Below, one piece after another: positions 29,981 to 32,296 of a DNA stretch of 64,000 nt. The notes below the pieces were generated by a model, which had not been told where the DNA came from, ran no database searches, and saw only the letters and a program-made list of their open reading frames with translations. The position numbers and the translations under genes are program-made. Position 1 is the first letter of the stretch. The number at the start of each line of letters is the position of its first letter. This DNA is from Haliotis cracherodii (taxonomy: Eukaryota). The DNA is taken from positions 38,130,001 through 38,194,000 of the forward strand of contig NW_027266265.1 in the NCBI RefSeq assembly GCF_022045235.1. Reading direction: 5' to 3'.

Positions 29981-32296
29981 ATGAACTGTTCATTTTATAC
30001 TTTGATCATTTTGATATTTGTTAGCAACTCCAAATGCCCAATGGAAAGTCCACTCATGGCTCTAGGGGGTGAAGGGGATATACTAAGTATAACCTTAAGA
30101 GTGTCAAAACTAACACTAATAGAAGAATACAAGAGGCTAACACCGACAGGGAACAGCTTCAGTAAAGATATTTGTAATGGGGTCATTGGTTTTGTCTGCA
30201 ACAAACATCATCTTGATAGCTCATTTGTTTTGTTTGACAAAGTATCACCTGTCCTACAGTCTTACTTAAAGAAACTAGTATCAAAGCATGATAAGACTAA
30301 GAGAGAGGGGGGAAAGCAATTTAAACACCTACTTGTAACCTGGGAAAATGAATTCTATGATCTCAAAGTTGTTGTTTCTGAACACTGTTTGCCATCAATG
30401 TTTTCTAAATTAGAAAAAGAGAGAAACTTAAAAAAGGAGTATTATCGTAAATATAAATCAGTGATCAAAAAGGCTAAAAGGCTGCAATCTAAAACTGTGT
30501 CTCTTAAAAAAAGAATTCGAAAGATGTCTACAAAGCCCTCACATTTGGATGGGAAGAAGTATCGAATACTGAAAGTGTCGTCCAATGAAAACACTTTGTC
30601 GAGATCACAGCAATACAAACGAAAACACATGCTGGTAGAAGACTGTAAAAAAGCCCTGACTTTCATGAACATTTATGAACTAGACCCATTATCAGTACAG
30701 GCACAAAGGACAGATGGTCAAAAGTGTTTAGTTTCTTTAACTGAAAACAATGTAACCAGTCATAAGGAAAATATGGACACTAATTTAGATAGACTTTTGC
30801 ATGTCAAAGATATGCAAAATATTTCAAACAAAGCATATCATGAGTTATCAATGACAATACCGTTTTTACCAAGGTCACATGTTTTGTCTCAAAAGATAAA
30901 AGAATACAATGATACTTTCAAAATAGTTAACACTCCAGATCCTAGTTTTGGTGTACAGCAATCCCTGAAAGATATATTAGGTAAATGTGTTTCACACATT
31001 TTGACAACAGGGGCTAAAGAGAAGCTTCTTGAAAGTAAACATCTGCATGTTAAACTAACTGGTGATGGTACTGAACTTGGCAGGACAAAAAAATTAATAA
31101 ATTTCGGGTTCACCATACTCGAGGAGGAAAACTGTCTATCTGTTAATGGCAATTACTTACTCGCTGTATTTTCAGGGAAAGAAACGTACCAGAATGTTTC
31201 AGATGCACTTACAGAAATCATTGATGAAGCCAGAGAATTAGACCATGTAGGTGTTCTTGGACAAATATTTCAGGTGACTTTTTTTCTGGGTGGTGATCTT
31301 AAGTTTCTGAACATGTTCTCAGGAATATCATCATGTGCTTGCAACTACAGTTGTGTGTGGTGTAAATGTCCATCAAAAGACCGATATGACACCACTATGC
31401 AGTGGTCAGTTAGTGACGTTTCTCAGGGAGCAAGAACTGTACAGGAAATATCTATGATGGCCACAAGAAAGTCACATAACTTTAACTGTGTTCATCCTCC
31501 CCTGTTTGACTTTATTCCAATCAATAGAAGAGTTCCAGATCTGCTTCACTTGTTTTTGCGCATATCCGATCAATTGGTAAAGCATCTTATCACAGAGTTG
31601 AGAGTTTTGGACAATGTCCAAAGGTGTAATAGTGTGTACAACAGAGATAGGTGTTGCAATGTCTCCAGATTTGAAAGATTTGTGCAGGGCCTTGGGGTGG
31701 AATTTCATTTTAAGAATGATAAAGCTTCGGGAAGATTCATTTTCCGTGATTTTACCGGACCAGAACATAAAAGGATTTCCCAGCATATTGTCATTACAGA
31801 TTTTCTTCCTAATCATCCCAAAGTGAAGGAAATCAGCTTTCTGTGGAGTGAATTCTCATCTATCTACTCCATTCTTGGGCAGGGTTCTTTTGAGGAGTGT
31901 GAAGTTGTCTCCCTTAATGAAAGGTGCAAGCAATGGGTACGGACACTTGTGATGGTTTACCAAATTAAAGACGTGACGCCTTACATGCATATCTTAGCAT
32001 ACCATGTCTGTGATATGATAAGACTTCATGGAAATCTGAGATGCTTTTCACAGCAAGGCTTTGAAAAGTTAAACGACAGTGTTACATCATGGTTCTTCCG
32101 CTCAACATGTCACAGGAGTAGGGAAGCATTGAAGCAGGTTATGCTAAAACAAAACAGGATGGTTTCTTCTCAGAGTTTTAGGAGAAGTCCTTTGAAAATA
32201 AAATGTAGTTTGTGTCAAGGGCAGGGTCATAATAGGCGGTCATGTACCAACAAGAATAGAGAAATTGAGTCCGATGGACACCTAGATCTGGCATGA
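29981..32296 (+). CDS. RAG1/Transib/Chapaev-clade DDE transposase (RAG1-core-like), 771 aa, intact; true start may be the ATG at 30041
   Basis: Uninterrupted ORF. Motifs VKLTGDG (D362), GGDLKFL (D439), CVWC (C458/C461), PDLLHLFLRI, TPYMHILAYHV (H670/H675) and FSQQGFEKLN (E695) correspond to RAG1 KESCDG, GYDEK, CTLC, DALH, TNYFHKTLAHV and SEGNESGN. Also a basic LSRSQQYKRK segment and C-terminal CSLCQGQGHNRRSC. Confidence 0.9.
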   Translation: MNCSFYTLIILIFVSNSKCPMESPLMALGGEGDILSITLRVSKLTLIEEYKRLTPTGNSFSKDICNGVIGFVCNKHHLDSSFVLFDKVSPVLQSYLKKLVSKHDKTKREGGKQFKHLLVTWENEFYDLKVVVSEHCLPSMFSKLEKERNLKKEYYRKYKSVIKKAKRLQSKTVSLKKRIRKMSTKPSHLDGKKYRILKVSSNENTLSRSQQYKRKHMLVEDCKKALTFMNIYELDPLSVQAQRTDGQKCLVSLTENNVTSHKENMDTNLDRLLHVKDMQNISNKAYHELSMTIPFLPRSHVLSQKIKEYNDTFKIVNTPDPSFGVQQSLKDILGKCVSHILTTGAKEKLLESKHLHVKLTGDGTELGRTKKLINFGFTILEEENCLSVNGNYLLAVFSGKETYQNVSDALTEIIDEARELDHVGVLGQIFQVTFFLGGDLKFLNMFSGISSCACNYSCVWCKCPSKDRYDTTMQWSVSDVSQGARTVQEISMMATRKSHNFNCVHPPLFDFIPINRRVPDLLHLFLRISDQLVKHLITELRVLDNVQRCNSVYNRDRCCNVSRFERFVQGLGVEFHFKNDKASGRFIFRDFTGPEHKRISQHIVITDFLPNHPKVKEISFLWSEFSSIYSILGQGSFEECEVVSLNERCKQWVRTLVMVYQIKDVTPYMHILAYHVCDMIRLHGNLRCFSQQGFEKLNDSVTSWFFRSTCHRSREALKQVMLKQNRMVSSQSFRRSPLKIKCSLCQGQGHNRRSCTNKNREIESDGHLDLA

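Follow-up and report, generated by a model that had tools for sequence, protein, structure and literature searches.

We analyzed a 64,000-nucleotide stretch of the genome of the abalone Haliotis cracherodii (assembly GCF_022045235.1, contig NW_027266265.1, positions 38,130,001 to 38,194,000 of the forward strand; hereafter the window), in which the long open reading frame (ORF) ORF2 encodes a transposase built on the plan of the RAG1 core. Our reading, to which we assign a probability of about 80%, is that ORF2 is the transposase of a recently active 5.47-kb cut-and-paste element and that its protein family branches deeply within the RAG1-Transib-Chapaev assemblage, distinct both from the invertebrate RAG1-like proteins (RAG1L) and from HzTransib-type Transibs.

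A preliminary description of this DNA, made from its letters, had named three acidic residues in ORF2 (D362, D439 and E695), a CxxC and an HxxxxH zinc-ligand pair and a RAG1-like distance of 256 residues between the second aspartate and the glutamate. All of these are present: a script check of ORF2 placed C458/C461 at D439+19/+22 and H670/H675 at E695-25/-20, and counted 256 residues from D439 to E695. The values quoted there for mouse RAG1, D600/D708/E962 with C727/C730 and H937/H942, agree with the published ones (PMC4914335). The offsets of the zinc ligands from the second aspartate and from the glutamate are thus the same in RAG1 and ORF2, and the distance between these two acidic residues is 254 residues in RAG1 against 256 in ORF2, whereas the first and second aspartates lie 77 residues apart in ORF2 and 108 in RAG1. 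Furthermore, across 65 aligned relatives, which are only 19-38% identical to the window protein, D362, D439, C458, H670 and H675 never vary, and conservation of C461 and E695 is at least 90%. The catalytic and zinc-ligand pattern of ORF2 is not a product of chance.

Searched alone, the window protein had no sequence match among Pfam families or PDB chains. When a profile of the 65 relatives was compared with all PDB sequences, only RAG1 and RAG1L were retrieved besides coiled-coil noise, with E-values of 4e-10 for zebrafish RAG1, 1.5e-8 for mouse RAG1 and 2.9e-7 for the amphioxus protein BbRAG1L; HzTransib was undetected at E<=1 in the same search. The profile alignment pairs the residues expected to be equivalent, setting GGDLKF...YaCLWC of the family against GtgyDEK...YICTLC of RAG1, and TPYmHilvyHvpe...QGlEklN against TNYLHKTLAHVPE...EGNESGN. 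The Pfam model of RAG1, PF12940, gave weak matches in 13 of the 65 relatives at E<=0.1 and no match to the window protein itself.

The predicted fold points in the same direction. An AlphaFold2 model of ORF2, computed from a 28-sequence alignment, had a mean predicted local distance difference test (pLDDT) score of 82.7, with values above 90 over most of residues 280-700. In this model all three acidic residues occupy the elements expected for them: the first strand of the RNase H sheet carries D362, strand 428-438 has D439 at its end, and helix 692-706 contains E695. The preliminary description had proposed comparison with the structures of RAG1, BbRAG1L and HzTransib, and a Foldseek search of the PDB ranked all three at the top: RAG1 chains at E 3e-15 (target template modelling scores 0.60-0.68), followed by BbRAGL (1e-11) and HzTransib (2e-11); Hermes came next, at 1e-3. 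Pairwise structural alignment with VIA-align gave a Z-score of 29.2 against mouse RAG1 (442 residues superposed at 3.2 A, from model 264-737 and RAG1 460-1007), 26.2 against BbRAG1L and 25.8 against HzTransib (412 aligned residues), followed by the P element at 13.8. The likeness to the RAG1 core and BbRAG1L (PDB 4WWX, 5ZDZ, 6B40) extends from the dimerisation domain to the C-terminal domain, at Z 26-29 over 442-457 residues, and in the case of BbRAG1L the alignment continues to model residue 764, opposite chain residue 1125, so that it includes the CCHC tail. HzTransib (PDB 6PQN-6PQY) has the fold predicted for ORF2, and both belong to elements with a single transposase. By family profile (4e-10) and by predicted fold (Z 29.2), ORF2 belongs to the RAG1/Transib superfamily in the broad sense of a shared RAG1-core fold, and the earlier suggestion of a RAG1-fold DDE transposase with the zinc-ligand geometry of RAG1 is borne out.

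The regions flanking this core were also compared with RAG1. Structural alignments with chains that contain the nonamer-binding domain (NBD) begin at model residues 192-206, opposite RAG1 400-420, and therefore the basic helix with LSRSQQYKRK plausibly occupies the position of the NBD in the model; HMMER sets the same helix against the RAG1 NBD sequence HLLSLTRRAQKHRLR, with a score that is not significant. At the other end of the protein, CSLCQGQGHNRRSC at residues 742-755 fits CX2CX3GHX4C, as had been noticed. This pattern, Cx2Cx3GHx4C, is that of the CTT* motif defined for RAG1L, and DNA binding has been shown for the CTT* of BbeRAG1L (PMC7204232). A CCHC tail is present in 34 of 76 full-length relatives, in 26 of those with the exact motif, and is kept in nearly all full-length close relatives. 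About 14 of the 76 instead end in a SAP-like tail (...ELKxxLxxxGIxTKxRxRxKLIxLL...), namely P0077, P0080, P0085, P0089, P0093, P0096, P0098, P0104, P0110, P0111, P0113, P0142, P0155 and P0161. The occurrence of two unrelated DNA-binding modules at one terminal position suggests that the tail of the family binds DNA, as does that of BbeRAG1L. By its sequence, however, the terminal motif is a generic CCHC knuckle of the retroviral type, and since it is also missing from more than half of the full-length relatives it carries no specific tie to RAG1L. The view of the tail as a RAG1L motif thus holds for the pattern itself and fails for its specificity; the motif has also been described for 'bacterial' and Subgroup I Transibs (PMC9435367).

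We determined the boundaries of the element by searching the same 1.18-Gb genome with the DNA surrounding ORF2. The genome holds eight 5' ends and six 3' ends of the element, and in every copy the terminal bases are CAAACC... and ...GACTTG, with no CAC start. Between the 5' repeat and the reverse-complemented 3' end (CAAGTCAAAACATA), 12 of 14 positions agree; this imperfect 14-bp repeat was the only terminal repeat found by a repeat search, and asymmetric terminal inverted repeats (TIRs) are a feature of the Subgroup I and 'bacterial' Transibs of Tao et al. 2022. The base at 27963 is T, A or C depending on the copy and is therefore part of the flank and not of the element. Two other pairs of termini, CAC...GTG/TA and TCAA...TTGA, were considered and excluded, because the copies fix the ends at CAAACC...GACTTG and the preceding base varies; likewise a Helitron-like reading, suggested by the missing duplication and a 'TC' start in the window copy, was excluded because the T of that start lies in the flank and ORF2 encodes an enzyme of the DDE type. 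Four copies on different contigs share 99% identity and all retain an intact ORF2, which in the three other than the window copy is 99.4-99.6% identical. Older copies are 80-93% identical and broken. Thus the common ends, inverted repeats, unrelated flanks and decayed older copies identify a transposon and not a host gene, and the element is active now or was so very recently. In this genome the wider family falls into several diverged lineages, with at least 10 intact ORFs, 569-775 codons long, besides dozens of fossils. Intact ORFs from its other lineages lie at C1:59353107-59355266, C12:69621452-69623455, C45:43316226-43317956, C12:13467575-13469578, C12:13492532-13494535 and C5:22228283-22229821 (contig:positions).

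The flanks of six full copies showed no target-site duplication of any fixed length, and five of the six showed none at all. The window copy lies inside an old mariner; its empty site could be reconstructed because many diverged mariner copies exist genome-wide (72-84% identity). Two paralogous, uninterrupted mariner copies read ...CTAAAC|ATCG..., and the window insertion reads ...CTGAAC-T-[element]-ATCGG..., with nothing duplicated or lost and one extra T. In the sixth full copy (contig 16), AATGG occurs on either side, one base off each end, but this case is ambiguous, as the target is a rearranged hairpin repeat whose hairpin is about 70 bp shorter there than in the paralogs L044-L048. The repeat that hosts this copy (L002, ~12.606 Mb) is abundant and has a long internal hairpin with arms ...GGACCCAGTGTCTTATCGTTGAAATGG... 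and its complement. Published duplications are 5 bp for RAG, RAGL and Transib (PMC7204232) and 2-4 bp for CMC elements (2026 Transib preprint), and the flanks of the window element's copies fit neither pattern. As to the neighboring DNA, window positions 27760-27962 and 33438-33640 hold the fossil mariner-like transposase gene, and the 3' flank of the element encodes an ...FHENNA... motif. About 300 bp past the 3' end of the element, at 33741-33921, lies a repeat of ~165 bp with many genomic copies at 87-95% identity, probably a miniature inverted-repeat transposable element or a short interspersed nuclear element unrelated to the transposon.

The N-terminus of ORF2 was described earlier as a coiled coil followed by an NBD-like basic stretch, without RING or Chapa domain. 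The order of a coiled coil (residues 134-184) and a basic helix (208-232) stands, the N-terminus is helical in the model, and neither ORF2 nor the upstream ORF1 contains a Pfam zinc or RING domain; however, the N-terminus as read is probably incomplete. Residues 1 to ~34 of ORF2 have pLDDT values below 50 and are unconserved, and the DNA encoding the start of the protein is a T-rich tract ending in TTGTTAG|C, which resembles a polypyrimidine tract followed by an AG acceptor. Such T-rich read-through also opens the predicted N-termini of several relatives in the family alignment. ORF1 stops 91 bp before ORF2, in another frame. Its residues 55-93 match the Pfam model MSL3_chromo-like at 30.1 bits against a cut-off of 28, and there are matches to Tudor-knot and Chromo as well. 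A donor at 29867/29868 would leave 2 nt of a codon, to which an acceptor at 30024/30025 would supply the third in the frame of ORF2, so that the predicted splice would fuse ORF1 to ORF2 from residue 16 on. The acceptor is kept in five copies, and a 4-nt deletion in the old copy C19 falls within the predicted intron. ORF1 is intact in three of the four young copies and 94% identical in the copy that has 90% identity overall. A probable intron may thus join the chromodomain-like ORF1 to the transposase. None of the 216 relatives fetched has an ORF1-like N-terminus, and the module, if real, is therefore specific to the window lineage. The features of the element are listed in Table 1.

Table 1. 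Features of the RAG1-fold transposon, in positions of the window.
Feature	Position	Strand	Basis or remark
Whole transposon, 5,474 bp	27964..33437	+	Copy matches end at the same bases, flanks differ
5' terminal inverted repeat CAAACCAAAACATA	27964..27977	+	Conserved in all 8 copies with a 5' end
ORF1, 244 residues, chromodomain-like region	29155..29889	+	Separate gene or first coding exon of the transposase
Predicted intron, 157 nt, GAG|GTGTAC...TTGTTAG|C	29868..30024	+	Phase-compatible GT..AG
ORF2, RAG1-fold transposase, 771 residues	29981..32296	+	Uninterrupted ATG-to-stop frame
Basic coiled-coil helix, residues 134-184	30380..30532	+	DSSP on the model; PDB coiled-coil profile matches confined here
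NBD*-like basic helix, residues 203-232, with LSRSQQYKRK, without GRPR	30587..30676	+	Non-significant HMMER alignment and structural alignments
D362, predicted first catalytic aspartate (KLTGDGT)	31064..31066	+	Invariant in 65 relatives; on strand 354-366
D439, predicted second catalytic aspartate (GGDLKF)	31295..31297	+	Invariant; opposite the aspartate of RAG1 GtgyDEK
C458/C461, predicted ZnC2 ligands (CVWC)	31352..31363	+	Opposite RAG1 CTLC
H670/H675, predicted ZnH2 ligands (YMHILAYH)	31988..32005	+	Invariant; opposite RAG1 YLHKTLAH
E695, predicted catalytic glutamate (QGFEKLN)	32063..32065	+	At least 90% conserved; opposite RAG1 EGNESGN; helix 692-706
CCHC knuckle CSLCQGQGHNRRSC, residues 742-755, CTT*/CTT1 type	32204..32245	+	Fits CX2CX3GHX4C
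3' terminal inverted repeat TATGTTTTGACTTG	33424..33437	+	Identical in all 6 copies with a 3' end

The transposase family is large and has no Pfam model of its own. At E<=1e-3 an exhaustive profile search returned 9,703 clusters, 1,185 of them with E<=1e-30; the best 150 of the 9,703 were all family members. A word-indexed search gave 27 proteins of 29-39% identity, and word-indexed protein searches returned family members only. All relatives with a named host are from marine invertebrates: the sponge Ephydatia, the abalone genus Haliotis (55% identity), the sea cucumber Holothuria and two scallops. When the family motifs were compared with the supplementary sequences of Tao et al. 2022, exactly two entries matched, CthTransib_0091 and CthTransib_0066, both from the set which that study calls 'bacterial Transibs'. 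CthTransib_0091 (item 17 of Supplementary Data 2, Natl Sci Rev, PMC9435367) is by-eye collinear with close relatives of the window protein from the LWRMGK/YSRQQQ region to the CCHC tail, with near-identical blocks at YSRQQQ, VKLTGDGTQIARG, FLGGDWKFLA, YACIWCKCP, SLHLFLRISDVLINLLIRD, VTPYMHAFAMHV, QQGLEKL and GHNKRSC, and judged from these blocks it plainly belongs to the family.

This assignment connects the window element to an existing classification, which divides Transibs into Subgroups I and II and 'bacterial Transibs' and uses the latter to root the RAG1/Transib tree (PMC9435367). In the same study the region equivalent to alpha11-alpha12 is retained in bacterial and Subgroup I Transibs, and Subgroup II Transibs lack this segment and carry a CTT2 tail; the CTT1 (=CTT*) tail is shared by RAG1L and Subgroup I, and an NBD equivalent by both Transib subgroups. 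ORF2 has the features of Subgroup I and 'bacterial' Transibs, i.e. the 256-residue spacing between second aspartate and glutamate, a zinc-ligand insertion that aligns over its whole length, a CCHC tail and, weakly supported, the NBD-like helix. The two published entries and ORF2 thus appear to share one protein family, but the records differ. Both published entries stand on short contigs of symbiont assemblies, with no TIRs identified for CthTransib_0066, whereas the window element is present in full: its ends are defined, and the 1.18-Gb abalone genome holds multiple intact copies of it as well as fossils. Unlike the records of CthTransib_0091 and CthTransib_0066, the window element has an upstream chromodomain-like ORF, and unlike the elements with identified TIRs in Tao et al. 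2022, which have a 5-bp duplication, it has none.

Because later work cites 'bacterial Transib' as evidence that Transib existed in bacteria before RAGL, the residence of the family matters, and we considered whether it could be bacterial in origin and residence, as Tao et al. 2022 interpreted it, with the animal copies being recent horizontal acquisitions. CthTransib_0091 and CthTransib_0066 do come from assemblies labelled 'uncultured SUP05 cluster bacterium', and a pattern scan that covered prokaryotes at one genome per species located copies in two GTDB representative assemblies labelled Nitrosopumilaceae and Nitrospirales. However, the SUP05 contigs measure only 3.2-4.6 kb, and on the printed contig of CthTransib_0066 no bacterial gene stands beside the element, whose gene model required AUGUSTUS introns. 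The Nitrosopumilaceae and Nitrospirales assemblies measure 4.3 Mb and 16 Mb, which is large for genomes of these types, and their family copies carry stop codons. In four 20-kb samples of the two contigs that carry the copies in these metagenome-assembled genomes (MAGs), 4-35% of bases lay in ORFs of at least 100 residues, compared with 2-15% in two stretches of the animal window; the coding density expected of prokaryotes is far above 4-35%. These two contigs, with decayed copies, measure 932 kb in the 'Nitrosopumilaceae archaeon' MAG (CBDBMG010000003.1) and 439 kb in the 'Nitrospirales bacterium' MAG (CBDBCZ010000010.1), and both look eukaryotic. From the large assemblies, stop codons, sparse ORFs, short contigs and introns we infer that the prokaryote-labelled records are likely host DNA in symbiont bins. 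Furthermore, all named relatives are animals, and in the animal genome the family has diverged into several lineages and left many fossils. We therefore regard a bacterial home of the family as improbable. Even less credence can be given to the idea that ORF2 is a former transposase domesticated by the host as a single-copy gene: it would account for a long and intact ORF, but the four 99%-identical copies sit on separate contigs with exact common ends and inverted repeats in unrelated flanks, and older copies have decayed, which leaves this explanation with next to no weight.

Within the assemblage, two further identities compete with a separate deep branch. ORF2 could be a true RAG1L, that is, the RAG1-like half of a RAGL transposon, as its CX2CX3GHX4C tail, its RAG1-length insertion between second aspartate and glutamate and an NBD*-like helix that lacks GRPR, as in RAGL-B (PMC7204232), might indicate. 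Yet the RAG2-like gene (kelch propeller plus PHD) that adjoins RAG1L in RAGL transposons, in convergent orientation, has no counterpart among the ORFs of 27964-33437, where the 1.1 kb downstream of ORF2 wholly contains no ORF of at least 80 residues, and the sole other ORF of the element is chromodomain-like and on the same strand as ORF2. Moreover, Pfam reveals no NZD or RING domain, PF12940 is silent for the window protein, identity to RAG1 and BbRAG1L is 12-15%, and the termini read CAAAC... instead of CAC... and lack a 5-bp duplication. The window transposase is not a RAG1L, and we consider this identity very improbable. HzTransib-type Transibs differ as well, since Transib ends begin with CAC and are flanked by 5-bp duplications and the window element has neither. 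More weight falls to the possibility that ORF2 is a transposase of the Chapaev group (CMC), a member of Pfam DUF1280 that has lost its N-terminal Chapa zinc finger. The nearest protein-language-model clusters bear DUF1280 (score 0.91, 190/256 shared features), the Holothuria relative P0050 exceeds the DUF1280 gathering cut-off (30.6 versus 25 bits), DUF1280 has been equated with Chapaev transposases and grouped with RAG1 (PMC3985635), and the preliminary description gave the GDLK motif and the CxxC spacing as common to Chapaev. The caveat raised there stands, as P0050 passes the threshold. However, at E<=0.1 DUF1280 matches one of the 65 relatives, against 13 for the RAG1 model, and the window protein matches neither; weak DUF1280 matches (E ~0.005) occur in two of 28 relatives. 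The N-terminal Chapa zinc finger is a hallmark of Chapaev transposases (PMC4411706; 2026 NZD preprint), and no Chapa-type Cys/His domain is present in ORF1 or ORF2, nor was a 2-4 bp duplication of CMC type seen in the flanks of the copies. On balance we find membership of the Chapaev group unlikely, though it retains substantial weight. It overlaps with a deep branch of the assemblage and does not exclude it, since Chapaev and Chapaev3 have been placed inside the broad Transib superfamily (Kapitonov and Koonin 2015). Chapaev and Chapaev3 (DUF1280; RepeatMasker CMC-Chapaev) are distant relatives of the RAG1 core, and so is the window family.

Three points weigh against the deep-branch reading that we prefer. 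AlphaFold was trained on RAG1 structures, so that the fold match is not fully independent of them; the sequence-profile match is. The termini without CAC and the missing duplication in five of the six full copies do not fit a simple staggered integration in the style of RAG and Transib. Finally, the standing of the family as a deep and distinct branch draws on differences in score, on the domains present and on where one member was placed in the literature. The earlier suggestion of a separate lineage is thus retained insofar as the family appears to stand apart from RAG1L and HzTransib-type Transibs, and corrected insofar as the lineage had already been published through CthTransib_0091. The kind of element, a transposon of the RAG1/Transib superfamily, was already known; new here are the ends without CAC, the lack of a regular duplication, the chromodomain-like module, and an element that is eukaryotic and active.

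By analogy with the solved RAG, BbRAGL and HzTransib complexes, a dimer of the transposase would use its NBD*-like helix and its CCHC tail to bind the 14-bp terminal repeats, the DDE triad with two metal ions would nick the ends of the element, and the element would be released via hairpins on the flanks. The protein has the domain order of the RAG1 core, with NBD*-like helix, dimerisation/DNA-binding domain, pre-RNase H, RNase H with D362/D439/E695, C-terminal domain and CCHC knuckle, and C458/C461/H670/H675 would hold one zinc in the ~255-residue insertion between the second aspartate and the glutamate.

That RAG1 descends from a transposase is a textbook example of domestication, and the deep branches of its tree are known from few sequences, most of them fossil or fragmentary. 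The element described here has an intact ORF, defined ends, sister copies, the full zinc insertion and a CTT* tail, which makes it usable for assays of cleavage and transposition on a basal relative. The invertebrate relatives and the apparently mis-binned eukaryotic records bear directly on the model in which Transib came before RAGL, in bacteria, and the absent target-site duplication and the chromodomain-like ORF offer testable biology. In its widest form, which we put forward tentatively and with the odds somewhat against it, our reading is that no eukaryotic outgroup of RAG1L plus Transib may stand closer than this family, a large group of metazoan transposons that is active to this day and that would be what the 'bacterial Transibs' at the root of the RAG1 tree really are. 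The window lineage would then also differ in mechanism, with ends that lack CAC, no duplication from a staggered cut, and a chromodomain-like module, either co-encoded or added by splicing, that could direct integrating copies to marked chromatin, in a functional parallel to the PHD finger of RAG2.

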